Under the pieces are notes generated by a model, which was not told the DNA's origin, did not search any database, and saw nothing but the letters and a program-made list of their open reading frames with translations. Both the position numbers and the translations under genes were made by a program. DNA of 64,000 bases from Pocillopora damicornis. Lineage: Eukaryota. Shown here in pieces: positions 1 through 16,412 of this stretch (position 1 is its first letter; every line of letters starts with the position of its first letter). Location: NCBI RefSeq assembly GCF_003704095.1, contig NW_020846649.1:248001-312000 (forward strand), in the 5' to 3' direction.

Positions 1-211
1 TTTTCAGAGTAGACAGGGAAATGCACCAGTTGCCATCTTCTTTTGACAACCTTGCCTAATGGTTGCAGCAAAGAAAACCAACTTGACTTCAGAAGTTAAA
101 GAATACAACTACATGAACTATGCATGTGCACCACAAAAAATAGACTGGATAAAGTAATCTGCAGCCTATCAACTTTGATTATAACGGTTTCTACAGTTCC
201 TTCCCACTTAC

Positions 212-3200
212 TCATTACTTGGGTCTTCTCTCTTGGCATAAGCCTGCGACCTCATAATTCGTTCCATGTTTCCAGACCAACCATAAGAGCTGGCAACAAG
301 AGCACAGGGTGACTCATCCAATCGCTGTGAGACGGCAGCCTTCTCAATCAGATCTTTCAAAGCGTCCTCCTTCAGCCATTTTAGCAGAGGCTCGTATGTG
401 CTCTCTAAGGCTTCTAGCTTCTTCTTCTGTTTCTCTGATTCTTCTCCGATCTTCAAACCTTCCTTGGCTACATTTTGGAATTTCTTGCCTTCAAACTCGG
501 GCAGACTCTGGATGCAGTATTCATCAACTGGCTCAATTAAGTAGAGCACTTCATAACCCTTCTTGAGCAGACGTTCCACAAATGGAGAGCTTTCAACCTT
601 TAAATTAACATGACATAGAATTATATAAATTATATATATACATGTAGGTACAACAAAACCTGTACATGTGAAGGTATGCAAGCACATTAAAGTTACTACC
701 AACAAATTAGGTTGCCTCCTGGAAAAATTTTCATACGCACACTACTTTGAAAGAGACCATGGAAAAATATATATCACTGTAAAGCTTAAAAATTATAAAA
801 TATTCAAAATTTGAAACTTTTGAGCAGAATTTTTTGAAGTAACCTTAGTGCATCATCTTTAACCAACTAACAACTCAAGCAAAGTGGGAAAAGCTCTTCT
901 GATACAACCTTTCCATTCATAAGATAACTAACCTAATCATGCAAGTGACCAAGACAAAATTTCTCCTTACAATATCAACACAATATCAAACAGGTAGGTG
1001 ATGAGAATAGAGAAGAATATCAATTATGGGATTATTAGCTGATCCAATACCAAATTCTCTGAGCTAACATCATAAGAATTGTATGGCAGACAGTAAGGAG
1101 AATTACTAATTAGATCTTGGGAGTGAAAGGGTTAACAGCTGGTCCTGGTTGTGTGGATAACGCTATCCACTGGATAAATCTAGATGGTTAGTGATTTATC
1201 CACTGAAGAGCACTGTCATCCCTTTAACAACTGGGCCTGATTTCTATTATTGTGCAGGATCTCACCTCCTTTCGGCTGGTTCCTGCCATGAAATAGATTG
1301 CGTCTTGTTTTTCCTTCATCCTCTCAAGATAATCAGCCAGGCTTGTCATGTCCTTCTCAGAATTAGAAGAAAAGAATCGGAGCAATTTGGCCAATCTGGT
1401 TCTGTTGGAGTGGTCCTCCATCACACCTAACTTGATGCTACAATGAAAACAAAAATTTCAGTTTATTTCAAGGAGATTCAATCCAAGGAAATTATTGAAA
1501 CTAATAAAAATCAAGGATGAGATCAATTCTAGCAGCTTTGATTTTTGGGCAAACTTGAAGAGGCTGAACAAAAAAAGAAAAAAATAATAATGCAAGAAAA
1601 TTATATACCTTGTGCTGAATTCCTTCCAGAATTTATCCATGTATTCTTCCTTGGGGATCTTCTTGATCATGTCCAGAGCCTTTCGTACAAGCTTCTTCTT
1701 GATCACCTTCAGAAGTTTGTGCTGTTGAAGATTTTCACGACTGACGTTGAGAGGCAGGTCATCAGAATCCACAACACCACGGATGAAGGAAAGATACTTG
1801 GGCATCATATCTTCAAAGTTGTCAGTGATGAAGACACGTCGCACATACAGCTTAATCTGATCCATCTTCTTGCCATATTCAGAGAAAAGGTTGTTTGGGG
1901 CGGATTTTGGCACATAGAGGATTGAACGGAACGTGACTTCACCCTCAGCAACAAAGTGGGTCTTGGCAAGAGGCTCATCATGATCCTGATAAATAACATT
2001 CATTGTTAATATGTAATACAGTATTGGTGTCATTTAAAACCATGAAATTTTGGAAAGTTAGTGCAATAGGCAGCAAATTATTTTTAAGTACATTTTTACT
2101 CAACCTATGACATACTCCATGCAACCATAAAGTGTACACCTTTACCACAAATAAAACAACTTGGAAAAATAACACAAATTGTTACATTCCACACAAAACC
2201 TCTATAGTTACACATTTACTGACTTATTGACTCACAGATTTTTTATCTTCATCTTTCTTATTAATATAAAATGATTTTTCATGGCATGGGAAAGAAACAA
2301 TCCGAGAAAAAAGTCAAAAAGTGAAAAGAAACTTTAGATCACAGAATTCCAAGTTACACACTGGTTTGTTACTCAATAACAACTGTACAAGTTAAATCAG
2401 TCTTTCAGAACAACACATAGCACAGTTCCAGAAGATACCTTAGTGAACGATTTGTAAAATTCATTGTATTCTTCATCTTTGACATCTTTGGGTTTTCGGC
2501 TCCAGATGGGTTTGTTTGTGTTAATAAGTTCCCAGTCCCAGGTAGTCTTTTCCACCTGAAAAACAACAACATAAAAAAATAAATAAAAGTAACAAAAAGG
2601 TGACTTCATTAATTTCCATCCAATTGTAACTTTGTAACTTCCATATCAATTGCAGTCTGCAGACTCCAAACTTTAAGTTTAAATTTGCAAAACACTTGTC
2701 AGTAAAACTTCCTTCTACAGATAATTTGTTTGCCACAAGTACAGTTCCTATGAGGGTTAATCCTCCTACTCTCTTAGAGAAAAAAGTTCCTTCACACTTC
2801 AAACCCCAACAGTGATAGGCATCTTATTTCTCCCAATATCATTTGTGAATTAAACATAAACGCAATGAGAATAAAAGAAATGATGGCTAGATCAAAAGGC
2901 TCTTGATCATTGTGTAAATTCTTCATGAAAGTGACAAAGAAAACATTTAAAGAACAGTGTGGAGAATTTGCAAACTGATGCTAGGGTGTTAAGGGTTACT
3001 TAACCTGCAGCAGACAAACCTTTTTAGTCTTTGGTTTCTTCTCCTTTTCCTCTGATTCCTCCTCCACCTCTGCATCATCATCCTTGTCTTCCTTTTCTTT
3101 GTCTTCATCTTTCTTCTCCTCTTCCTTCTCTTCATCTTTCTTATCTTCCGCAGCTTCATCAGCTTTCTTGTCTTCTGCAGCTTCCTCCTCAACTGGTTCC

Positions 3201-6200
3201 TCTACTTCCTCAGTCTTGCTGGTCCACAGGTAAATGTTGAAGTTGATGAACTGACTGTACTTCTTGACAAGGTCTTTGATGGTGTCGGGCTCAAGGAAAT
3301 CGCGAGCTTCTTCTTTTAAGTGAAGGCTATGGGACAAAACACAATTTTATACATAATCAAATAATTCAAATAATGAGGCATTATCTTGCCTCTTAAAAAA
3401 GCATTTGTCAAACTCTTTGAAAACTAGGTGGAGGATGGAAGGGGGGAGGAAAAACACGCATTTCTGCTTAAAATGCACAGATTCAAACAAATATTTTACC
3501 TAAAAAATACAACATTAGACATAATAGGAATATTTGTCCTAAAATAGAGGGTAAAAAAAAAATAAAATGATTGTAAAATAGATGATCACAATGACTGCCA
3601 AAATAAGGTAACAACGCCAGAGGAAAAGAACTGATGTCAAGAACAAGGAGAAAATAGTTGAGGAACCAAGCTTCACCTTTTCTTCAAAGCCAGAGGCCAA
3701 AGTGTTTGATAAATATACCACATACTGGTAAATCACCCTGCATACACTATGTTTGGACAGATTGTTTAACGTACATTGAAAAGTGGATATAATCACCTGA
3801 CAGTTGTTCCCCTCTTCAGGGTGTCACCCCTAGGATCCTCTGTGATGCTGAAGGAAGCTGCATCAGACTCCCAAATGTACTGCTTGTCATCATTGTGCTT
3901 GGATGTTACAATCACACGGTCGGCAACAAGGAAAGTCGAGTAAAATCCCACACCAAACTGACCGATAAGATCACTTGCCTGATCACTAGACTGAGCGTCC
4001 TGTAGATTCAATAAAGTAAAGCTTTAAGGATATGGGGACAAAAGCAAAATGACTAATGTAACACTCAGCACTGCAAAAAATGACTGTGGGAAAACATAAC
4101 TGTAAGGGAGACCTTGAAAAAAGGGAGTACATAAGTGGGGTTTTGAATATTGCTGTGCACAATTAAGCTGACATAATTACCAGACACTTGCATCAAATCT
4201 ACAAATGTAAGCATCCACACCATCAAAGTCCTAATTTGGTTAGCGTGTGCTGCACTCTGCATCAAAGGCCTAAGGAAGTACAGAAAAAATTCTCACCGAC
4301 ATCTTCTGGAAAAACTCGCTTGTTCCTGACTTGGCAATGGTACCCAGGTTTTTGACCAGATCATCTTTTGTCATACCAATGCCAGTATCAGTAACATGAA
4401 GGATGTTGTTCTCCTTATCAGCTTTGATCTTAATTGACAGTTCCTCTGTGGCTGCAAGGGCTGACTTGTCCGTAAGTGACAAAAATCTGATCTTGTCCAA
4501 TGCATCAGAAGAATTGGAAATAAGTTCTCTCAAGAAAATCTGAAAGAAAAAAAGATAATTTCAACCTCTGATTATTACCAGGTATCTTTTTATTTTTGAT
4601 CGAAAATAATGCTAAGAACAAATTGACATCATCTACTGGTGGTACCAAAATTAATGAAATAATCAAGAAGTCTACAACAAATTTTCTTGTAACAGTGTTC
4701 AGTACAATAGTATGAATAAAGCTTGTATTTCTACCCTTCAAGATTTCGAAAAGTGCACATTTAAAGATCAAGCTGAATGTAAAAGTAGGGCTTAAAACAA
4801 ATTTTTGAATGGAGGCCAATAAAGCCAACTGACCAAAGAAATTTAAGCTTGTTCAGAACCCAACACTGACCCATCTCATTCATTAAATTACAGTTAAGAT
4901 GACTGTACATTAAAGACTTTCCAAAATGTACACAATTTATCAACTTGACGCAAGGTGGAGTTTTTGGCTGTAAGTCAATATTCTGGCTAAACACCATCCA
5001 TCAAACATCCACTTTTTAGAGTTTCTAGAACCAGCAGTTTTTTCCCTCAGATCTTGCTTATGCCATAACACGTCCAAAATGGTCAAAATAGAAAGTGCTG
5101 TCAAATTTCTCCTACCTCCTTATTTCTGTACAGAGAATTGATAATCAGCTTCATCATTCGGCTAACTTCAGCTTGGAAAGTGTGTTTCTCAGCCTTCTCT
5201 CTAAGTTCTTTCATCTGAGCCACATTCAAACCATCCAGTTTGATAGCTTCCTCCTCCCTCTGAACAGCTTCATCATCTGTCTTGGATCCATCTCTACTTT
5301 TTCCAACATCTTCATCTACTGTGGGTGGTTCTGTCTCTGTTGGTTCTTCTGTCTTTTCTTCTTCTGCCAAACAAAAAGCTGCAAAAAAGGAACCAAAAAA
5401 TTAAGTCTACCATGAAAAGTCTGACAAAAATCTCGTCTCAAAAAGTTGATACCAAGAAGAACAAGACAAAGATGATGCTACTTTAACAATTGCACATGTT
5501 CCCCAGAGCTCTGAAGACTCATGCAAATAAATTCAGTCCTACACTCTGATTTAAACTGTTGTTTTCAAGATAGCAAACCACTGTTTCAGTCAAGTACCTA
5601 TCAAAATAATAATTTATCCTTCTAAATTTCATTACTCCCCTTGCACTAATGCTTCAGACACTTTCTTGCAGTGGAATTTCTGACTTAGAATAAAGAAATG
5701 CATGTCATAATTGTGTCATTTTTTCACAATTTTTCCCCGTGAAAATAATACCTACAGCATTAGAATTATAAGCTATGCAGACAAAAATTTCAAAATCTAG
5801 CAGCAAATCAACTTGAGAGCTTTAGTACCAAGTAATTATCACATTAATTTATAGTCATGAAACAGGTATCTTTTACAAACAACATGAGAGACATTTTGTT
5901 TTATCAGTAGATAAAATAATTCCATTTTTCAATTCTCTTGCTTTTGAAACAATAAGATGCCATTAACTGAAAATGAAACATCTGGAGAAAACCTTTTTAA
6001 GTATGTAAGGTGAACAAACAAAACAACACATAAAATCCCTTAACTCAAAAACCTGTGGTAAAGAACTACATTGTTTATAACAAAGGGCTCAAGTGGACCA
6101 CAATGTTATTGTTAATGAAACTTAAAATTGCACAAGAAAAAATAAAATAAAATAAGTTGAATAAAAACAAATTTCTTTCAATTTCTTTTCAAATAGTTGA

Positions 6201-7182
6201 CAATCTCTATGAGCTACAAGTACTTGTTTATCTTCAAGATGTTGGACATATCTGGCCAATTCCTATTGGTTGATAGCAAGTATCCAATCACAGGTTGACA
6301 TATCTCGAGGGCTGGATTTTTAAAAGTTTTGAGTGCTTTTTCTAACAATTAGCTAATGCAACTTCCCAAATTAGTGCTTTTGCAGACGTTTTCCACTAAA
6401 GCTGTTTCAGAAATAACTTTTTGCCACCTCTTATATCTAAATGCATGAAAGTGTACCCTAAAAATTTTCAAATAATCCACTCCAACATGATTTGAAAAAG
6501 AAGGGATTTCCCAAACTCAAACCCTCAAAATCATCTCAGTTAGAAATCTAATAAAGATTATCTAGTGGCTCTAAGGAAAAATAATTCAACTATGTAATAT
6601 TTCGTTGTAAATTCACTTTCTATATAAGAGTATTCATTTAAATGTAATTGAAGTCAATAAGTTATACCAGAGAAACATTGTATAATAAACAATACCATCA
6701 ATGTAAGTATACAAGTCTAAATTATCCTTTAGGACCGTGTTTCGTTTCATAATATCCACAATTTCCGAGTTATATTTCCGACGGTAGACGTACATGAATC
6801 TAAATCGTTGCCAATAAGTACGTTGCTAATGGACAGTTTCCAATCGACACAAGTGAGTGGTGAAATCGAAAGGCAATCGATCGTGACTTGACAATATAAA
6901 CGTATCGAATTTTGCAATTACCCACAGACCGAATACTCTGAAGCTTACTTTTAAAACAAAACGGCCGAAACCTTCCCTGCAAATCTGACGTAGGACTATT
7001 TGCTTTCATGTACATTGAAACGAAATAAAATTTTTCGTGAGCATAAAAATTATTCGAGGAAACTGTGCGAACTGAAATACTTGCAAAACTCAACTTTTCC
7101 TTACGCAAAAAAAAGCAAGAGTACACTTACAAGAAATAAGAAGTAGCCCCAAGAGGCCTAGCAGGTACGATTTCCTTCCCAT
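212..7182 (-). CDS. HSP90B1: Endoplasmin / GRP94 (ER HSP90), 3'-partial
   Basis: Coding exons 7182-7131 (signal peptide [17 protein letters not shown]), 5378-5116, 4539-4297, 3999-3797, 3326-3020, 2555-2439, 1985-1609, 1437-1266, 597-212, all GT-AG with compatible phases. HSP90 motifs [63 protein letters not shown]; GRP94-type [11 protein letters not shown] and FQNVAKEG. Final exons (and the expected KDEL) lie beyond position 1. Confidence 0.98.
927..1135 (-). mobile_element. TTAA-flanked ~210 bp MITE, subfamily A
   Basis: Ends ...gagtgaaagggttaa; internal sequence shared with the copies at 9620, 13692, 56415 and 63491. Confidence 0.75.
1139..1238. repeat. Short palindromic MITE-like element
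   Basis: Imperfect inverted ends ggtcctggttg / caactgggcc with internal tggataaatc / gatttatcca symmetry. Confidence 0.55.
2757..2998 (+). mobile_element. TTAA-flanked MITE, subfamily B (degenerate)
   Basis: Similar to 22074-22285 (agaacagt.tggagaat.tgc..actgatg.tagggtgt.aagggtta). Confidence 0.6.
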
Positions 7183-7287
7183 TCCTTGAAATCAAGATAA
7201 AACAGATGTAAATGACAGCAGTACCGCAAAATCTGTGCTAAACTTTGAAGTGCAAGGAAGTACTATGCAGCTTTCAATCGATCCAAA

Positions 7288-7375
7288 CCAACCAAAATTT
7301 TCCACGGCCAAAGCTCGTGTCTTGTTCTAATTGGCTAATCTTAGTCACGTGCTTAACGTGGAGCCCTTTGGTTGG
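7288..7375. promoter_or_regulatory. Three ERSE-like elements in the HSP90B1/CRELD bidirectional promoter
   Basis: CCAAC-N9-CCACG at 7288-7306 (+); CCAAT-N9-ACACG at 7316-7334 (-); CCAAC-N9-CCACG at 7357-7375 (-); E-box GTCACGTG at 7344-7351. Each differs by one base from the ERSE consensus CCAAT-N9-CCACG and keeps the exact 9-nt spacer. Confidence 0.8.
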
Positions 7376-7883
7376 TTTATTTTTCCATGTCATTTCATTG
7401 ATTCCCATGAGTGAGCCCTCGCTTTGCGCCGAGGTTTAAAAAGTATTTGAGAGAATTTACTTTTAAACTTATTAAAAAGCTACTTAGCTTTGTTCTCAAA
7501 TGATCAATAGATCTACCAACTCTGAAAATTTCAGATATATTTTAATGTTTTGTCTCACCTCACGTGGAATGATTATGAATTTAGGACGCAAAAAAGTGAT
7601 ACAAATTATTGTACAATGGCTGATCAAAACTTTATTCTCCTATCTATTAGCGCGGTTTTCCCTGACTCACCAGCGGTTTTCTCTTCAAGAGAAACACGAT
7701 AATTTCACCGGGCTGAAATGTTATGCGACCAGTTTTCTATAATATAATCTTGCTTTAATTCAGTGATCGAAGTTATATTAACCTATTTTCGAATGATGTG
7801 GTAGAATTCTACCCTTCGAATTTCTGCTGTTAAATTTGCACTTGTAGACACATTGCAGCATTTTTTTTCTCACGTGAGAGCTA

Positions 7884-10800
7884 ATGGAAGTCTCTTTGAA
7901 GATGTCAAAAACCTTGATTTTACAAATCTTTATAGTTGTAAACATTTTAATGTGCACCGCACTTAGATCAGCTGCTAGGGAAAAGAAAGCCAAATGCCCA
8001 ACGTGTAGAGACATCGTAGAAGCTTTCAAGAAGGTAAATATTAAATGCTTTTATCTCACCTAACTCCTAATTATTGCATTACAGAACTTTGTCAAATGAT
8101 TAATTATGGGGCTAAGTCAGCTTAGGTATATTTTGTGGTGTCGTATTTCGTAAGATTAGATAGAAATTTAATGGACGGTTTCGATTTTTGTTTCTGGAAA
8201 AATTATCCTTTGTTTATTTTGTTTTGCTTTGTTTTTTTTCTAGTTTTTGGCCTAAATATCTCTAATGATATAATAGAGAGGATGTGCAGTAAAACTTTGA
8301 CAAAAGTTTGAGAGACGTGTTAGAATTAAATAACAAATGCATAAATTAACTCGTAAACCTTAAGTATTAGATTTTTTTTTGCCCTTGATCTTGCTATATA
8401 TCTATATTCCTTGTAACTGATTTGAGGAAATTTGGTGCTAAATCAAGGTAATACCTTCTAGCTGATAGATTTGTCAATTCTTGTGAATTCTTTGCTGTTT
8501 AATCTTTGGTTATTACAGAACTTCTTGAAGTTGAGCCATTCTTTCTTATGTTATATTTTGGTATGCAGATTTTAGGACAGATGTGAGGAATAAAAAATTT
8601 GACTGTAGCTGTTTTAAGGTGACTGGAATAAATTTGCATCTTTGAGACATCTATTTTTAATTAAAATTACTATTTTTAGGGAAAAGAAAAAACAGCAAAA
8701 GCTAACTTTGGTGGTGGAAACACAGATTGGGAAGAGAGGAAACTTGGAAGCTATGCAAACAGGTATTTTTTGGAAAAAAAAACTTTATTCAAACTTTTAC
8801 CATGACATTATTTTACTATGACTCAGCTAAATCCACCAATCACAGAATTGATCACAATTACCATAGCAACAACCACTTACCTTGAAAAGAAAACTGGGAA
8901 ATTTCCAAATTTTTTGCTTCAGACACTGTTCTTAGCGGAGACATTTGTCCTAATTGTATTTTCTTTCCAGATATTGTATTGGTTTGATTAATTGGTAGCA
9001 GGACTTCATGTTGTCCAGTTCTGTCTGTAATCATACTTATTATTGACAAATCAGACTCCCATTCATGGTCGTCCAATTTTGTTAATAACTCGTGTGATTA
9101 CTGGCTGAATTGGACCCCACTCGTTCCTATTACCATTATTAAGCTGTAATAGTCTTCCTTGACTAAGTCCTTAACCCATTAACTACCATGAGTGAGCAAC
9201 CGAAAGTGATGAGAATAAAGAAAAATATCAATTATGGGTTTACTAATTGATTCAATACCAAATTCTCCAAACTAACTTAATGAGAATCATTTGGCAGACA
9301 GTACGGAGAATTACTAATGAGATCTTGAGAGTTAAAGATTAAGGCCTGTTTCTATTGTCTTCCACCTGTATTGAATGGCCACTTAAAGCAGAACCTCTCA
9401 AATAAAACTAAGAATAATCTCTCAAGTCAAATTTATTCTCAAAATCAATGTTAGTACTTTGAGAATTCCCACAAGTTATTGCAGATTATTGTTTTTCTTT
9501 GAACTGTTAGGACAACTATTATGCACAAACAAAGCGCAAGTCATTTGCTGGTCAGACTGTATTAAAGGGTCAACTTGTTGTATTAAACTGTCACCCCGCT
9601 ATTACCCATGGGTGACTGCCTAACCTTTTAACTCCCAAGATCTCATTAATAATTCTCCCTACTGTTTGTCATACAGTTCTAATAATGTTAGTTCCAAGAA
9701 TTTGAATTGGATCAACCAATTATCCCCAAAATTGACATTAATTTTTTTCTCTATTCTCATCACTTATCTGGTTGATATTGTTTTGATATTGTAAGGAGAA
9801 ATTCTTTCTCGGTCACTCATGGGAGTTAAAGGGTTAATACAGGTTTGACTGAAGTGGGCTGTTGTCCCTTTTCTTTGATACACTCAGGAAAGTTACCAGT
9901 TTCTTGGTGATACCACATCTCTAGTCTGGAATCCCTCTGCTATGGAAAAAACACTGACTGATGATGTACTGTGGGGCACAAACAAATTTGTACCATTGTT
10001 AAGTGGATTAAATAATACCCTAGAGTTCATGCCACACCTTTTTGAAAGAGTGCAGCTTTTTATTTTAGGGTTATACCTGAAGGAAAAAACTACTAGTATA
10101 AACAGTTGGTGGTTAATGTTCTTTTGTTTTCTTTTTGACTAGTGAAACCAGACTAGTTGAAATTATGGAAGGACTTTGTGAAGATAGTGCTTCAGAGGTA
10201 ATTTTCTTTGAAATTTATTCCTTTAGTTCAAAACGTTACTGTGAAGTCACAGGATTGGAGTATTCTAAATTGTGCAAAATAACTTAGCTTTAAAATGAAG
10301 GCAATTTGCGGAGGATAAAATTTTAAAGAGATATTTTGCATTTTTGCCATCATTCTGTCTTTCTTACGCCTCCTTGAAGAAGGGCACAAGCTAGCCGATA
10401 GTTCAGTCCCCTTGACTTCTCCTAGAAAATAAACTGTCTTTGATTGTCAATTTTTTTCCTTTTTTTTTTCTTTTTTTACAGTGCCATGCAATGGTTGAAG
10501 AACAAGAAGAAACATTAGAGGAATGGTGGTTTACCCAGTAAGTGAGGTTTTGATGGTTGAAGTTTTTTATCCTATTTCAGGGAAGTCACATGGAAATCAA
10601 ATGACATTCTTTAAGTGCAGCAATTTTGTGCCCCAAAAATATCAAAAAGTTTTTTATTTAAAAACATGCAGTCCTAACGTTTAATGACTGTTTTCTTTTT
10701 CACAGCCAGTTTAAAAATGATGACATGAATACTTGGTTTTGCATTGACAAGTTAAAAGGTAAGTGTTGTACATACTGAAAGTTCCTTTTTATCACTTTCC

Positions 10801-13800
10801 TAGCTGGAGTTCATTATTTTAATTTCTTTTTTCTTTTCTTTTTTTTTCTAGTGTGCTGCCCTAATGGCACTTATGGTTCAGATTGTAAAGGTATGCCTAC
10901 TTAGCAGTCTTCATTTACCACTGATGATTTGCAAATTTCACCTTTTACGGCTTTAGACTTCAACAGTGTTCACTTTGTATGTGTTCTTTACAGTGAAATG
11001 GCTTTCATTTTAATTTATTAATGATCAGACAAATGTTTTGTTCAATGTCAGACCCCATGTTTGTCATAATGAGTAAGTCTCCTTGGCCCCTTTTCAACTT
11101 AAGCTAATGTGAACCAATTTTATATGTACTTATTTTCTGTTGCTCATTTAAAAAATAAATTCATCTCTTTCTAAAAGTTTTCCTTCTATTATTTTGAATC
11201 TGTAGAATGTTCAGGAGGAAAAGATACTCCTTGCAATGGCCATGGAAAATGTGAGGTATGCAAGTATCAATTTTGAATGAAAGGGCTGAACTTTTATACA
11301 GCTTATTTTTAAGACATTGTAACGGAATTAACTCTTGGACCTATGCATTACCAGCTCTGTGTTGCAAGGAGTAAAACACATGCACAGTGTTGACCTGATT
11401 ATTTTATTTTCAGCTTACCAGTAAATGTCAGGAATTGCAGTGCCCTTGTGAAAAGTACCCTAGTTTTATAATAAATATCTTTGCAATGATATTTAGGGTG
11501 ACGGCACAAGGGAAGGAACAGGAAATTGCTCATGTGACAGCGGGTATGAAGGTGACTTATGTGATGAGTGCGAGGAGTTGTATTTCGAGGAGCAAGATGA
11601 AAATTCTAAGCCTAAATGCACCGGTATGTATTCTACAAATTATCTTGGGTTTGCAACTCCTTGTGTTATGTATTGTTACGTAAACAGCTGGCACTTGATA
11701 ACAAACTGTTGCTTATTTTAACAGCGTGTCACGAGTCTTGTGCAGACAGTTGCTCTGGCGGCTCACCCAAAGACTGTGAGAAATGCAAAGAAGGCTGGGA
11801 TATGACAGACGAAGATGGATGTAAAGGTATTTGTTGAAAAGTATATTTGGCGCGACTGTGTAGTTCCATGTATGCCCAAGAGCTGTGCTCCTGCCCTTTC
11901 TTAACGGATTCCAAGAGCGAGGGGAAAGTTAAAGTTTAAGCAGATTACAAGCAAGACAAGGGATAGGGAAAGCAAGTTGCCGAATAAAAGCGCAGGAAAA
12001 TGGAAAGGCGATGCAAAGAGCGGGGAGTAACATGCAGGTTGTCTGTCTCAATGTTAAGTGAATGCTTGAGGAAAGTCATCGTTAGAAAAGCCCGAAAAAA
12101 TGTATAGGACTAGTAACAAGCGTTGCTTCACAAACAACGCATGCCAAGCGCAGGAAAAGATACAGGTAGAGAAAAGTGCGGGAAAGGATATGCAGGCGTT
12201 ATATACGTAGTAAGGAATAAAGACTGGAATTGGGCGTACAGGTGGGATAACGTACAACGCAAGCCAAGCGCGGGAAAACATAAGTAGCGGGGAGAAGCGC
12301 GGGAAAATAAACGGAGCTCAGCGAACTCAAAACCATAGCAAGCATACTCTGTGGTTACTTTTGAGTTTTGACAGCCAACGGGATGCATGTTGTTTTGATT
12401 AATGTATTTTATTCTTTTCAGATAAAAATGAATGTGATGAAGAACATATCTGTGGAGAGGGACAGTATTGTGTGAATAATCCAGGATCTTTTGTTTGTAA
12501 AGGTAATGTGTATGACCCATTAATCGTGGCGAGTTTATTGAGTGATTTTCATTTCGCCGACATTCAGTTGTTTGATTGACTGCTCGCAAACGTAGTCTCG
12601 AAGTTGTTACCAAATTCTCATTCGAAGACCCAAAACATAAATGAATGGTCATCATCTTGTACTTAAAGAAAACCTTACTCCGTTAGATCGGGCAATTCCA
12701 AGGCTCTCAGACTTTGCGGGACAGCTAAAGAGCGAGCGGGCTACAAAATGGCGGCTATTCCGATCCATCCCTCCATTCGGACAGATAATAAGTGACTTAA
12801 CAATTCACTTCATATGTATCTTTTTCAGGCTGCGATGATTCTTGTGAAGGCAACTGCACTGGGGAGGGTCCAAAGGGATGTCTTGAATGTGCCAGCGGTT
12901 ATGTTAAGAATGACGAAGAAGAATGTAAAGGTTAGTTTATTACAAGAAATGAGGAGCACTTTGTTACTTGGGATGTGATAGATATATCTCGCCGAGGTTT
13001 TATTTGTTGCAAAAATGCCACAAAACGCTCATAGCACTCAACACTTTTAAGAAAGCAGCCTAGGTTAGTAGAAATTCAGTTTTGAAAATAACGAAATTGC
13101 ATTTGTTGTTGAACTAAAGCTCAGCTGTAGACTAGGGGAGAAGGGGTGGAGGTTTGTCCAAGAGAACATGCGAATTAACCCCCCCCCCCAACCCCGTTGC
13201 CTTAGCGCTCGTTTAAGCCTCTGGCAAATTGTTGAAAACCGCATTTTGGACTGAATAACTAGTTGCAAAAGGTGAACTTAAGTTCGAATATATTTTAAAG
13301 TATTTAATTAACTTGAATTTTTTTTCCTTAGATGTGGACGAATGTTCCGAGAATTCAACCATCTGTACCAGCGGAAAATTTTGTGATAATACCCCTGGAT
13401 CATTTGTTTGTCGTTGTAAGAAATCTTTCTGTCTGTCATAATTGTTTTCCATCTGTCCCTTTTAAGACGTTTTGATATTTAAGGAGAGGTTGTTTTTAAT
13501 TCACCGTGCTTTTATTTCAGCCTGTCACTCTGCTTGTGAGACTTGTATCGGAGAGGGGTCTCGAGGTTGTACAAAATGCAACGCTGGGTATCAGATGACC
13601 GAGAATGAATGTAAAGGTAATAATACGCTTTCTCTATCAATGAGAATATCAGGGATAAACAGTGAACGCAAGCTAAGCGGTTCTACCTGTTTTATCCCTT
13701 TAAATCCCAAGATCTCATTAGTAATTCTCCTTACTGTCTGCAATATAGTTCTTGTGATGTTAGTTTGGAGAATTTAATATTGGATGAAGTAATAATCCCC

Positions 13801-15149
13801 TAATCAAGATTTTTTCTTTGTTCTCATCACTTGTCTGCTTGATATTGTATTGATAGCGTTAGGAGAAATTCTGTCTTGGTCACTCATGGGAGTTATCGGG
13901 TTAACCCAGTTTCCGTAGCATAAAGCGAGTTGGAGAATTGCAACTCCTCAGTCCTGTTGGACGGGATCAGTCTAGCCCGCGAGCACTAGCTTCGTTAGTA
14001 GCGCTGCAAGACGGGTATTTCTCTGTCCGTGGAAATATTTCAAGCGAATCACGGAGAGGTTTTCAGGGGGTTTGGCTCTAATAATCAGTGCTAGGCACCT
14101 TGCAGACCTCGCGGCGACTTACGTTGTTTAAGGCCTCACACTTTCCCGCGGGCGAAGAAACACTCGTGCCAAAGCACCAATGATGAGGGCCTGGTCGCCA
14201 GGATTAGCCTTTCATAGTTGACCACCCTGTGATTCGTCAAATGCCAAGAAGATTTGAACTAAGATAATTGAAAGTCGCCAGTTTGCGACCGTACACCATG
14301 ACATGGTCGCCAGAAATTATATTTAGTCGCAATTTTCCATGGAAGATGGCGACCAAGAATTGATGGTGTTTTGTGCAAATGATTATCTAAGTGGTAAAAG
14401 CGTTACACCTTACATGAACGTCGAACACAGTTTGTGAATTGTCTTTTTCGTTGTGAATTGTCTACTGCCCAAGTAGCGTTAATACTTGCGATGATGACTC
14501 TCATCTTAATAGTTCGTGAAATTCATTATGAGGACTTTCGCGGTCGCCGAAGTGTTTTCCGCCCATCATGTCGACCAAATCGGTCACCGCTTAGAGCGCT
14601 GCGTTTACACACACTGATGGCGAAAGACCGTTTGAGTCTTACATAAGGGCCGTTTGAGTCTTACATAAGGGGAGCCAACTAAGGCTCTAACCCGGATAGT
14701 TCGATCTGAAGTCTAGCGTGGCAAACATTAGGCCACCAAGTTCCCCACGAGAAATCTTCAAAACGAAGAAAAATTATTTATGTTATTATTTAGATAAGGA
14801 CGAATGTTCCTCAGACGAACACAGCTGCGACCGAGAATCAGAAAAATGCCGAAATATGCCGGGTAGTTTCACCTGCGATTGTCAGAAAGGCTTCAAACGT
14901 GATGGGGACAAATGTGTGAAAAAGAAAGGTAAAAAAAAGACGGATAAAGGCAAAAAGACAGTGGAAGAAGAGCTTGCAGATGTGCTAAAAAAGGGCGACT
15001 ACTTCAGCGAAATGCAAATGAAATTTGGTTCCGTCTTATTCGCATTATTTTTCGCTTGTGCAGTTGCCGCTGTCATGAAACGCAGCTTGCTTGCTATAGT
15101 TGTTATGACTGTTGTGTATGCTTTCATTTGGTGGTACTTCAGAACGTGA
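7884..15149 (+). CDS. CRELD: CRELD (cysteine-rich with EGF-like domains), membrane isoform with two C-terminal TM helices (CRELD1-like), ~477 aa
   Basis: Exons 7884-8033 (signal peptide, CPTC CXXC motif), 8680-8762 (KTAKANFGGGNTDWEERKL signature), 10143-10197 (SETRLVEIME), 10482-10537 (EEWW, WE domain), 10706-10758, 10852-10890, 11206-11255, 11497-11623, 11725-11826, 12422-12502, 12829-12930, 13332-13415, 13521-13616, 14794-15149. EGF, furin-like and Ca-binding EGF (DxDEC) repeats. Summed length 1434 nt is in frame. The start may be the second ATG at 7902. Confidence 0.95.
8822..9142 (+). repeat. ~320 bp interspersed repeat, copy 1
   Basis: Reverse-complement homologue of 57062-57393 (ctcagctaaatccaccaatcacagaattgatcacaat...cctattaccattattaa). 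Confidence 0.8.
9171..9342 (-). mobile_element. TTAA-flanked MITE, subfamily A (internally deleted)
   Basis: ttaacccattaact start; ggcagacagtacggagaattactaatgagatcttgagagttaaa end. Confidence 0.7.
9620..9837 (+). mobile_element. TTAA-flanked MITE, subfamily A
   Basis: taaccttttaactcccaagatctc ... gggagttaaagggttaa terminal inverted repeats. Confidence 0.8.
11985..12310 (+). repeat. Degenerate tandem-motif repeat (gcgc[ag]ggaaaa units) in a CRELD intron
   Basis: Recurrent aagcgcaggaaaa / gcgcgggaaaa motifs. Confidence 0.5.
13692..13904 (+). mobile_element. TTAA-flanked MITE, subfamily A
   Basis: ttatccctttaaatcccaagatctcattag ... gggagttatcgggttaa. Confidence 0.8.
14628..14671. repeat. Exact 22-bp tandem duplication
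   Basis: ccgtttgagtcttacataaggg twice. Confidence 0.85.
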
Positions 15150-16308
15150 CAGTTGTGGACACCTGAGGTAGAAGAAAGATTCTGCGTGATAGATGTAGGT
15201 CTGATTGTGGAGATGAAATGCAAGATCTGCATAATCAGACCCATTCACTTTTTGAAGCTTTTTGGCCTGAACACTTATTTTAGTGGTATCCCCCGAGAGG
15301 GTTTTTTAGAACAAGATAGACCCCCGTGTTTTTTCTTACCTCCGAGGTCGAACCACGTGTTGCTGTTAAACCAAAGCCTTCGTAGAGCCAATTCGTGCGT
15401 TATACATGTTCTATTAGTTGATTGAGATACCTGACTGGAGGTATCAATTCTTCTGATATCATATAATTTTTTTTCAATCTTGATAAAAATTCTAAAAAAA
15501 AATACAGAGAGAGTTAAGTTCAGGGAGATCAGGAGGTTGTCCATTTTTAACATCTTAAAAGATGTTAATGTAGCCTGAATCGTATAAAGTTTAATATATC
15601 AATACATCTATCGAATCAGAGGGCCGTTGTTTGTAATTGTTGGTTGAGCCGGGTTGGGAACTTTGCGATCCTAAACAAGCTTGGCTCTTTAGAGACATTT
15701 TGCACCACGAAAAGATTTTAAAAATATAAATGAAGAGCTCCTTTTATTTCAGCCGAAAGGCAGTTTATCTACCTACCTTAATTTAGCTGAAGTTTTACAG
15801 AAAACAATCGGTAATTTAGCTCGTTTATAAACTTTGACAATTTAGAGTAACATTTTGCCTATATTAATACTTTCAAAAAACCCCATTATTAAGGATGAAA
15901 TGTAGTTGCAGGAGTTTTGTGTATCTCTTGCGTGACAACATAGTAGTGTCACGTAATTCGAGTTACATTGTGCTAATGACGTAACTTACTCTTAAATGCT
16001 TTTATCCAGAAATTCACTTGTGTGGTGTCACTTTTGCTGTTGTTGCTTCTCTTTCTATCGGGTTTCCTCTAACATCCCTCTTTCAAGAGGAGGAAGAACT
16101 CCAAGTGTTTTTTTTTTTTATAAACGATGTCAACTCGTTTCTCTAAAGGTCGTGTGTAAAGTTCGTGAAGAGTGTTCGTTCTGCTTGGTTGTAGCTTTAT
16201 GGCGTACGTGTGCTTGTTTTTTCTTTGTTTGCTAATGTTATGTGTGTTTATTTGGGTTACTTCGTTTTGTTTATTTTGTTTTGTTTTGTTTTTCTGTTGT
16301 TACTGTAG

Positions 16309-16412
16309 CAGTTGTGAAGCATGAAGAGGAGCAGGAGGAAGATGATGACGAGGACGATGAAAAAGAAAAGGATAATAGCAAAAGTGACTCCAGCGAGAAG
16401 GAGGAATTATGA
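16309..16412 (+). CDS. CRELD: Alternative terminal exon of CRELD encoding an acidic tail ending KEEL (soluble CRELD2-like isoform, ~438 aa)
   Basis: Long T-rich tract then tag/cag tandem acceptor at 16306-16311. Phase-1 reading gives (A)VVKHEEEQEEDDDEDDEKEKDNSKSDSSEKEEL-stop. AATAAA at 16448-16453. A phase-1 donor AAG/gtaaaa after 14928 lies just after the last EGF domain and before the TM region. Confidence 0.85.

Follow-up and report, generated by a model that had tools for sequence, protein, structure and literature searches.

A conserved ERSE module between the head-to-head GRP94 and CRELD genes of Pocillopora damicornis and related corals

Can one cluster of stress elements serve two genes that are transcribed away from each other? 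The unfolded-protein response (UPR) belongs to the earliest changes in transcription that heat elicits in reef corals, and in Pocillopora damicornis an ER chaperone gene, GRP94 (HSP90B1), lies head to head with a CRELD gene, with ERSE-like motifs between them. An earlier note on this DNA proposed that a single ER stress switch couples both genes. We have analyzed the locus within the window, the whole stretch of 64,000 nucleotides (positions 248,001 to 312,000 of contig NW_020846649.1) to which all coordinates refer, and compared it with related assemblies.

The gene pair

The GRP94 ATG (7182, minus strand) and the CRELD ATG (7884, plus strand) diverge with 701 bp between them, in agreement with the head-to-head arrangement at about 700 bp given in the earlier note. 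The exons that matter here are the following.

5116-5378, minus strand: GRP94/HSP90B1 exon 2, encoding the acidic pre-N region and the first part of the N domain (RNA contigs of 4 runs; joint 5378->7131)
7131-7260, minus strand: GRP94 exon 1, with 5'UTR (7183 to at least 7260), ATG (7182-7180) and signal peptide (coding part 7131-7182) (RNA contig of run X1)
7672-8033, plus strand: CRELD exon 1, with 5'UTR, ATG at 7884 (or 7902), signal peptide and CPTC motif (spliced contigs of 4 runs)
8680-8762, plus strand: CRELD exon 2 (joints 8031->8678 (+2) and 8760->10141 (+2), all 4 RNA runs)
10143-10537, plus strand: CRELD exons 3 and 4 (about 10143-10197 and 10480-10537), DUF3456-like (joints 10141 and 10537->10706; weak PF11938)
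14794-15149, plus strand: last CRELD exon, with calcium-binding EGF, Lys-rich linker and hydrophobic tail of CRELD1 type (EGF_CA E 9.5e-10)

(i) GRP94. Exons 1 and 2 match endoplasmin/GRP94, and exon 1 encodes a hydrophobic leader. The top PDB matches of exon 2 were endoplasmin (E 1.6e-29), with cytosolic HSP90 far weaker (about 1e-4), and an exon-by-exon search gave HATPase_c and HSP90 Pfam matches. The gene thus encodes the ATPase and middle domains of an HSP90, together with the signal peptide at the N terminus and the acidic pre-N region that are typical of the ER paralogue; its 3' end falls outside the window, before its start. The run X1 contig spans 7131-7260 and begins precisely at the splice site; the exon 1 peptide and its TGTAAGT donor are kept in all relatives. 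For both genes, protein and domain matches refer to exons searched one by one, not to joined full-length proteins.

(ii) CRELD. The spliced contigs of the four RNA runs have their 5' ends at 7672, 7771, 7847 and 7847, and the joint 8033->8680 has GT..AG ends. The inner boundaries of exons 3 and 4 are approximate, as they come from RNA depth alone, and contig depths were not taken as expression levels. Exon by exon, we found a signal peptide, a DUF3456-type domain with CXXC, Cys-rich furin-like/EGF repeats and a calcium-binding EGF. EGF_CA is matched clearly (E 1e-8 and 1e-9), some exons are rich in C-x2-C, and the PF11938 matches are weak and below threshold (E 0.007 and 0.026), the domain being broken up into small exons. 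The last exon closes in a long hydrophobic stretch, the C-terminal transmembrane feature of CRELD1-type proteins. This tail is kept in loci L008-L011 and L015, in which the exon is 33-44% identical. The exon is single copy, with its sole full-length match in this P. damicornis genome here, and the plus-strand gene is, judged from sequence, the animal's only CRELD gene. A phmmer search of the whole library with the same exon was dominated by multi-EGF proteins, recovered no full-length CRELD and was useless for synteny. Identity of the exon 1 peptide ranges over 66-78% in L004-L007 and L029. The first Met of this peptide (7884) is not kept, being GTG in L007, so translation may in fact begin at the second one (7902). 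The N-terminal domain of CRELD belongs to the DUF3456 family, which includes CNPY3/PRAT4A and MZB1, client-specific co-chaperones of GRP94.

The ERSE module and its surroundings

Three ERSE-like elements with exact N9 spacing, one on the plus and two on the minus strand, had been reported within 88 bp of the interval, and our scan confirmed them as described, at 7288-7375. The regulatory features of the interval are listed below.

7288-7306, plus strand: ERSE-C, CCAAC-N9-CCACG, facing CRELD, 28-46 bp upstream of the farthest GRP94 RNA 5' end
7316-7334, minus strand: ERSE-B, CCAAT-N9-ACACG, GRP94 orientation (one-mismatch motif scan)
7346-7351, no strand: E-box/G-box CACGTG (TCACGTG), invariant, at a fixed +24 from ERSE-A
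7357-7375, minus strand: ERSE-A, CCAAC-N9-CCACG in this assembly (one-mismatch motif scan)
7447-7460, no strand: conserved motif TTGAGAGAATTTAC (AAATTCTCYC in GRP94 orientation), about 75 bp CRELD-ward of ERSE-A (alignments A1 and A2)
7634-7685, plus strand: CRELD core-promoter/TSS block TATTCTCC ... GGTTTTCCCTG ... CCAGCGGTTTT (alignment A2; RNA contig start 7672)

Each of the three ERSEs carries one mismatch, so none is a perfect consensus. One-mismatch matches number 5 in the 64 kb (1.79 expected from shuffles), and the 3 within 88 bp compare with about 0.0025 expected. Read from ERSE-A, the E-box lies at +24, ERSE-B at +41 and the reverse ERSE-C about 9-14 bp beyond ERSE-B; to our knowledge, the fixed ERSE/E-box/ERSE spacing (+24, +41) has not been described before. 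Bipartite boxes with an exact 9-nt spacer thus occur in multiple copies in the proximal promoter of an ER chaperone gene. The CCAAC box of ERSE-A is private to this assembly (plus-strand G at 7371); we regard it as a private variant because all 10 Tara Pocillopora contigs (n = 10, 96-99.7% identical over the region) read CCAAT.

Other candidates were set aside. The extended motif CCAACCAAA-N5-CCACG had one other genomic match, in an intron of a Glu/Lys-rich gene, and was taken as chance; we see the CCAACCAAA extension as peculiar to this locus and, in the case of ERSE-A, as a private variant. An HSF site (nGAAnnTTCn) fits the conserved AAATTCTC motif at some loci only. On the CRELD side (7376-15200), we found no further ERSE with at most one mismatch and no exact UPRE (TGACGTGR), nor any ERSE-II near CRELD. 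This side does hold further TCACGTG motifs at 7561 and 7871, which brings the CACGTG sites in the 701-bp interval to 3, against about 0.09 expected.

ERSEs also stand upstream of other ER genes of this genome. Two in tandem precede the first exon detected for BiP (KDEL tail), and a single perfect one precedes that of calreticulin (KDEL tail), in both cases by about 500-600 bp; one NF-YA gene is present. We rejected deriving an ERSE regulon from genome-wide counts, as the enrichment of perfect ERSEs (172 versus 136 in the reversed control) was too weak; the BiP and calreticulin checks were more informative.

Conservation among coral lineages

The related loci (L004-L015, L029 and L030) are grouped here into four sequence lineages. 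The head-to-head pair recurs in the same orientation in 10 other assemblies, with 645-870 bp from ATG to ATG, and the ERSEs of the related loci lie 95-139 bp from the GRP94 ATG and 454-738 bp from that of CRELD. Nine of the 10 have the rigid module (ERSE, TCACGTG at +24, second ERSE at +41), the exception being L012, and 7 of these nine have the reverse ERSE as well. The E-box is at +24 in 12 of the 13 loci checked, and its columns are 100% identical in alignment A1. Column identity reaches 97% in the ERSE boxes, 67% in the N9 spacers and about 60% in the flanks; the box value was attained in 0 of 20000 permutations, so that the boxes are constrained and the spacers drift. ERSE-A is a perfect CCAAT-N9-CCACG in nearly all relatives and ERSE-B in the second coral lineage, and the CCAAC and CCACG boxes of ERSE-C are kept in L004-L010, L029, L030 and all Tara contigs. 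The conservation of boxes, spacing and orientation over several divergent coral-like lineages argues that the ERSEs are real regulatory elements and not chance. Among the surrounding sequences, the TTGAGAGAATTTAC block (7447-7460) is kept across both main coral lineages (alignments A1 and A2), the CRELD block at 7634-7685 only in the window's own lineage (alignment A2), and the TCACGTG motifs at 7561 and 7871 are likewise not kept beyond that lineage.

In L004, L008-L011 and L015, GRP94 is followed downstream by a TPR/NPHP3-like gene. Since gene order around the pair is conserved more generally, the persistence of the pair is by itself no proof of selection for coupling, and the adjacency of GRP94 and CRELD may be passive. 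In the annelid Ridgeia, the 10 kb upstream of GRP94 contained no CRELD exon, and none was found in other metagenome contigs of non-coral origin, so that the idea of an ancestral arrangement is unsupported beyond coral-like loci. An ERSE-like cluster is present in the annelid GRP94 promoter too.

Transcript ends and heat response

Mapping of both TSSs had also been proposed. By RNA contig ends, which are not mapped cap sites (CAGE or 5'RACE), the farthest 5' ends are at 7260 or beyond for GRP94 and at 7672 or before for CRELD, at most 411 bp apart, which makes the interval a bidirectional promoter by the usual definition (TSSs <1 kb). No RNA contig from the 4 runs, of 4 studies, falls within 7364-7560. 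The distance from the module is 28-115 bp to the GRP94 5' end and 297-384 bp to the farthest CRELD RNA 5' end. The annotated P. damicornis creld2 TSS is near 7704, as implied by a printed 500-bp upstream sequence. An earlier Pocillopora analysis of this 500-bp stretch noted only a putative NF-kB site (10.1101/640177), and the ERSE cluster and the GRP94 neighbor appear to have been overlooked there.

Published Pocillopora heat data (Supplementary File S10, bioRxiv 10.1101/398602) give log2 fold changes for New Caledonia and Oman and then a baseline difference. The endoplasmin-like XLOC_007535 (+0.49/+0.47, baseline -0.95) and the CRELD2-like XLOC_007538 (+0.60/+0.65, baseline -1.13) rise similarly and are listed as co-induced, their tie to the genes of the window being by product name and near-adjacent numbering only. 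BiP (+0.64/+0.76), calreticulin (+0.53/+0.68) and PDI are among the co-induced genes too (10.1101/398602); with unlinked ER genes responding alike, co-induction is no proof of a shared element.

Comparison with known promoters

Metazoan bidirectional promoters are head-to-head pairs <1 kb apart, often rich in CCAAT/NF-Y and co-expressed. The coral interval resembles them in its divergent TSSs <1 kb apart, its NF-Y-type CCAAT boxes and its functionally related genes, but its CCAAT boxes are within bipartite stress elements and not constitutive ones. Yoshida et al. are said to have described, in 1998, clustered ERSEs in the vertebrate GRP94, GRP78 and calreticulin promoters. The coral module is similar to vertebrate ER chaperone promoters, with several CCAAT-N9-CCACG copies in both orientations within about 150 bp upstream, and GRP94, GRP78/BiP and calreticulin are ERSE-bearing families common to vertebrates and coral. 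We know of no pairing of GRP94 with CRELD in vertebrates.

The closest parallel is the mammalian CRELD2-ALG12 bidirectional promoter, which the earlier note had described correctly. In mouse and human (Oh-hashi et al. 2010, PMC3091781), a CRELD-family gene is head to head with a gene of ER function, with ERSEs between and both genes stress responsive, as in the coral. Both intervals are <1 kb (<400 bp in mouse, PMC3091781; <=411 bp between RNA ends in the coral). The single mouse ERSE gives a strong response in one direction and a weak one in the other (PMC3091781) and is CRELD2-proximal, whereas the coral has three ERSEs plus the E-box, proximal to the partner gene. That partner is GRP94 and not ALG12, and the coral CRELD has, unlike CRELD2, a CRELD1-type transmembrane tail. 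The binding of CRELD2 to GRP94 mentioned in the earlier note stands as co-purification only: GRP94 co-purifies with Creld2 CXXA trap mutants, alongside BiP and PDIs (PMC3842181).

Does one module serve both genes?

With moderate confidence, we propose that this is a conserved divergent pair of stony corals in which the ERSE module is the UPR enhancer of GRP94 and most probably the stress input of CRELD too. GRP94 and CRELD are transcribed away from a shared stretch of at most about 411 bp that is itself untranscribed. Judged by homology to the ERSEs of vertebrates, NF-Y would sit constitutively on the CCAAT boxes, and under ER stress, heat included, cleaved ATF6 and/or XBP1s would dock on the CCACG halves and raise transcription; from about 300 bp away from the CRELD core promoter, the module would also feed the stress induction of CRELD. 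Given its two distances, control of GRP94 by the module, as UPR enhancer and proximal promoter, seems near certain and shared control of CRELD plausible. We consider that the module most probably supplies the stress induction of CRELD also, because no other ERSE-type element is in reach, ERSEs tolerate changes of orientation and distance (they function in both orientations and at about 300 bp) and CRELD is heat induced with GRP94, BiP and calreticulin. Against shared control count the asymmetry of the module (28-115 bp for GRP94 versus 297-384 bp for CRELD) and the fact that CRELD owns a lineage-specific core-promoter block and TCACGTG motifs at 7561 and 7871, which are possibly independent.

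These last points lead to an alternative that we find distinctly possible, though short of probable: the module would serve GRP94 only, CRELD would have its own promoter some 300 bp off, any stress response would come from TCACGTG at 7561/7871 or from GGTTTTCCC, and the adjacency would be passive microsynteny, hard to break because the interval is short. It agrees with a module that is GRP94-proximal at every locus (95-139 bp, versus 454-738 bp to the CRELD ATG), with a separate conserved block that coincides with the CRELD RNA 5' end, with the excess of CACGTG (three in 701 bp, about 0.09 expected), with the syntenic TPR/NPHP3-like neighbor and with the asymmetric effect of the mouse CRELD2-ALG12 ERSE (PMC3091781). 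However, neither the block next to CRELD nor the motifs at 7561 and 7871 are kept outside the window's lineage, while all four lineages share the pair and the module; CRELD2 of mammals is a target of ERSE/ATF6 regulation and no other ERSE is present for the coral CRELD; and the heat induction and baseline shift of both genes are nearly equal. At the other extreme, direct cooperation of CRELD with GRP94, in keeping with the DUF3456 family membership that CRELD has in common with the GRP94 co-chaperones CNPY3/PRAT4A and MZB1, could be the reason why the pair has been maintained since ancient times as a co-regulated unit, with shared ERSEs keeping a stoichiometric balance in coral heat and ER stress and the linkage lost in vertebrates upon CRELD duplication, which we hold to be unlikely.

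The nature of the module itself could also be read differently. As a general or heat stress enhancer, it would be read mainly by, e.g., NF-Y and a bHLH-ZIP factor (USF or MiT/TFE type) on TCACGTG rather than being an ATF6/XBP1-type UPR element. The E-box is indeed as invariant as the ERSE boxes and fixed in position, ERSE-C has in all lineages a CCAAC, a poor NF-Y site, and the expression data are of heat and not of specific ER stress. We consider this reading very unlikely, as the CCACG halves are conserved at exactly N9 from CCAAT, the signature of an ERSE, the same bipartite motif is upstream of BiP and calreticulin, which are classic ERSE genes, and the annelid GRP94 promoter has an ERSE-like cluster too. 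That the three motifs are functionless chance matches to a degenerate pattern would suit the absence of a perfect consensus in the window and perfect ERSEs barely commoner genome-wide than in the reversed control, but it is effectively refuted by the conservation pattern: boxes conserved and spacers drifting over multiple divergent assemblies, with perfect consensus elements in relatives, besides the clustering of three matches in 88 bp against about 0.0025 expected.

Significance

The bipartite ERSE grammar of vertebrates is found unchanged at the GRP94, BiP and calreticulin genes of a cnidarian. The 88-bp cis-regulatory module, defined by sequence and present in several coral lineages, is a candidate reporter for corals, or a marker of the activated UPR in them. 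In mammals, the products of GRP94 and CRELD share ER folding complexes. The locus is also a natural setting in which to ask if a single stress enhancer can act on both members of a divergent gene pair.

Identity and transcription of the gene pair

The window is contig C3284:248001-312000 of a genome of 234.35 Mb in 4393 contigs. GRP94 and CRELD were identified exon by exon, with each exon queried separately. Minus-strand exon-sized open reading frames from 211 to 5370 gave HATPase_c and HSP90 Pfam matches, and the piece at 5104-5370 matched endoplasmin chains with an E value of 1.6e-29, versus about 1e-4 for cytosolic HSP90; we assign this gene to GRP94 (HSP90B1), with its 3' end beyond the window start. 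The plus-strand gene, whose later exons gave weak DUF3456 matches, Cys-rich repeats, and two EGF_CA matches in the exon-level search, is a CRELD of the CRELD1 type. The two genes are divergent, with ATGs 701 bp apart, just as the earlier note had described.

7131-7182, minus strand, coding part of GRP94 exon 1, which encodes a hydrophobic leader
7884 (ATG), plus strand, CRELD exon 1, coding for a leader and a CPTC motif
14794-15149, plus strand, last CRELD exon, with a long hydrophobic tail at its end and a single copy in the genome

The first methionine of the CRELD reading frame (7884) is GTG in one coral-like locus from another assembly (L007) and missing in a second lineage of such loci (L008-L011 and L015), and the second methionine at 7902 (MSKTLIL...) is the more likely start. 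For an open reading frame at 16236-16409 that ends in KEEL, no counterpart was seen in the second lineage over the 3 kb that follow the tail exon; the loci of the closer relatives end before that distance.

RNA contigs from four runs of four studies, labelled as coral or marine metagenome, were placed on 5000-10900. They join GRP94 exon 2 (5116-5378) to exon 1 at 7131, with one contig spanning 7131 to 7260, and they join the CRELD exons at 8033 to 8680, 8762 to 10143, and 10537 to 10706, with spliced contigs beginning at 7672, 7771, 7847, and 7847. As the outermost contig ends lie at 7260 and 7672, and no RNA contig from the four runs falls in 7364-7560, the 5' ends of the two mRNAs are at most 411 bp apart, these being contig ends rather than mapped cap sites. 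The supplement of bioRxiv 10.1101/640177 prints a 500-bp Pocillopora damicornis sequence as "upstream of creld2"; it matches the window from 7203 onward, and the gene model in that paper implies a CRELD transcription start near 7704. Together with the coral and marine labels of the RNA runs and the near-identical Tara contigs described below, this match identifies the animal as a Pocillopora coral. The pair is real, conserved, expressed, and divergent.

Within CRELD intron 2, the stretch 9137-9924 attracts hundreds of RNA contigs at 90 to 95% identity, many with loose ends, and a summed contig depth of up to hundreds of thousands, which indicates a high-copy transcribed repeat.

The ERSE module and its conservation

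The three ERSE-like sites (consensus CCAAT-N9-CCACG) of the earlier note are present, each with exact N9 spacing and one mismatch. One-mismatch matches number 5 in the 64-kb window, versus 1.79 expected, and three of the five lie within 88 bp.

7288-7306, plus strand, ERSE-C
7316-7334, minus strand, ERSE-B
7346-7351, CACGTG E-box
7357-7375, minus strand, ERSE-A
7447-7460, motif TTGAGAGAATTTAC (core GGAGAATTT) on the CRELD side of the ERSE module, conserved in both main coral lineages
7561-7566 and 7871-7876, further CACGTG palindromes
7634-7685, conserved CRELD core block

The ERSE cluster lies 28 to 115 bp upstream of the GRP94 RNA end and 297 to 384 bp upstream of the CRELD RNA end, both measured from contig ends. 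The layout is identical in all loci but L012, with CACGTG at exactly +24 from ERSE-A and ERSE-B at exactly +41, and most loci add an ERSE-C in reverse orientation 9 to 14 bp beyond ERSE-B. Both ERSE-A and ERSE-B match the consensus perfectly in the second lineage and in L030, another coral-like locus; ERSE-B is an ACACG variant within the window's lineage, and ERSE-C, where it occurs, has CCAAC. ERSE-A has CCAAT in nearly all other relatives and in all ten Tara metagenome contigs of Pocillopora (96 to 99.7% identical over 7041-7950), so the CCAAC of the window (7371-7375; variant base 7371) is either an assembly error or an allele private to this assembly, and a mirror-symmetric pair of CCAAC boxes is no trait of the species.

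When the intergenic module was aligned across loci, column identity was 97% in the ERSE boxes (30 columns), 100% in the E-box, 67% in the N9 spacers, and about 60% in the flanks, and random column sets, 20000 in all, never attained the identity of the boxes. We read this pattern as the footprint of putative protein-binding boxes rather than of a stretch that evolves slowly throughout. The ERSE module at the GRP94-CRELD pair is genuine.

The three CACGTG palindromes, all TCACGTG, are three of the eight in the window. The one inside the module is invariant in corals, and the other two are kept only in the window's own lineage; candidate binders are USF, MiT/TFE, or bZIP proteins of the G-box type.

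Age of the linkage

Loci in other assemblies were reached through exon-level homologs of GRP94 exon 2. In L004-L011, L015, and L029, GRP94 has CRELD exons upstream of it on the other strand; L012 and L030 likewise have a CRELD-type exon 1, with a leader and the pattern C-x2-C-K-D/E-I/M. The distance between the ATGs ranges from 645 to 870 bp in the window and 10 other assemblies, with the ERSE cluster ending 95 to 139 bp ahead of the GRP94 ATG and starting 454 to 738 bp from that of CRELD. Judging from exon 1 peptides and the 33 to 44% identity of the CRELD tail exon, these loci represent four lineages or more: the window's group, L008-L011 with L015, L012, and L030. The suggestion that the arrangement is ancestral found no support, as no CRELD exon was detected in the 10 kb ahead of GRP94 in the annelid Ridgeia, nor in the 5 to 7 kb available ahead of it in L099 and L102, two metagenome contigs with perfect ERSEs.

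In Ridgeia piscesae (L013, 9778-9867), an ERSE-like cluster lies directly upstream of the annotated GRP94 start, consisting of CCAAC-N9-CCACG, CCAAT-N9-ACACG, and one more site, the same box variants as in the coral. A TPR_12/NPHP3-like gene is placed tail-to-tail with GRP94, about 7 to 10 kb downstream of exon 2, in L004, L008-L011, and L015; the syntenic block therefore exceeds the pair, and adjacency alone is weak evidence.

ERSEs elsewhere in the genome

An ERSE set at GRP94, BiP, and calreticulin is known from vertebrates. In this genome, BiP (a KDEL-tailed HSP70; L016, C2200:86500-93500) has a perfect and a one-mismatch ERSE in tandem, 33 bp apart and in gene orientation (2207-2258), about 500 bp upstream of the first detected exon, and KDEL-tailed calreticulin (L018, C3290:433500-441000) has one perfect ERSE in gene orientation at 4190-4208, about 580 bp upstream. 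No ERSE was found upstream of the calnexin-like gene (L017). Perfect ERSEs number 172 in 234 Mb, which gives any one gene a chance of less than 0.1% of having one within 1 kb. With ERSEs at GRP94, BiP, and calreticulin, the vertebrate-type set is thus present in this coral, whose genome has one NF-YA gene.

Contigs C21, C433, C978, C1873, and C1915 carry many perfect ERSEs of the form CCAATCAG-N4-TTCCACG, in groups of 3 to 4 per contig and 5 to 40 kb apart, which points to a mobile element or a repeated gene family as the carrier of the motif.

Shared or separate control

The module is very probably the unfolded protein response promoter of GRP94, and we lean slightly towards its also driving CRELD. 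From what is known in vertebrates, ER stress would find NF-Y on the CCAAT boxes and ATF6(N)/XBP1s bound to the CCACG halves, and the same module may feed CRELD too. Three points argue for the latter: 7376-15200 contains no other ERSE (≤1 mismatch) and no exact UPRE, ERSEs work in both orientations and over a few hundred base pairs, and in the mouse ERSE direction and distance are immaterial to responsiveness (PMC3091781). Against a single switch stand the position of the module, which hugs GRP94 in all cases, the core block that CRELD has of its own, the TCACGTG sites at 7561 and 7871, the asymmetric response of the mouse CRELD2-ALG12 pair, and the little weight of adjacency beside a syntenic TPR/NPHP3-like neighbor.

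Published data on heat-stressed Pocillopora from New Caledonia and Oman (Supplementary File S10, bioRxiv 10.1101/398602) bear out the co-induction proposed earlier, as the endoplasmin-like and CRELD2-like genes both rise in both populations.

Response to heat stress (10.1101/398602): log2 fold change, stress versus control, per population; baseline, control-level difference, New Caledonia versus Oman
Gene; New Caledonia; Oman; baseline
Endoplasmin-like XLOC_007535; +0.49; +0.47; -0.95
CRELD2-like XLOC_007538; +0.60; +0.65; -1.13
BiP; +0.64; +0.76; -0.83
Calreticulin; +0.53; +0.68; -0.47
A PDI; +0.42; +0.56; -0.78

The two XLOC entries fit this pair by their near-adjacent locus numbers rather than by contig mapping. 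Because unlinked ER genes behave alike, heat co-induction is no proof of a shared element, and shared control of GRP94 and CRELD is plausible but unproven.

As for the claim that CRELD2 binds GRP94, what stands is co-purification and nothing beyond it: Creld2 CXXA trap mutants brought down GRP94 along with BiP and PDIs (PMC3842181), and HSP90B figures among earlier proposed partners in a later study (PMC12316087). A full-text literature search turned up neither a GRP94-CRELD pair nor ERSEs of cnidarians. The known system nearest to this one is the bidirectional ERSE promoter of mammalian CRELD2 and ALG12; the coral differs in having GRP94 as the partner, three ERSEs that lie near the partner gene, and a membrane-type CRELD. 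The GRP94-CRELD interval joins this known class of ERSE-bearing bidirectional promoters.
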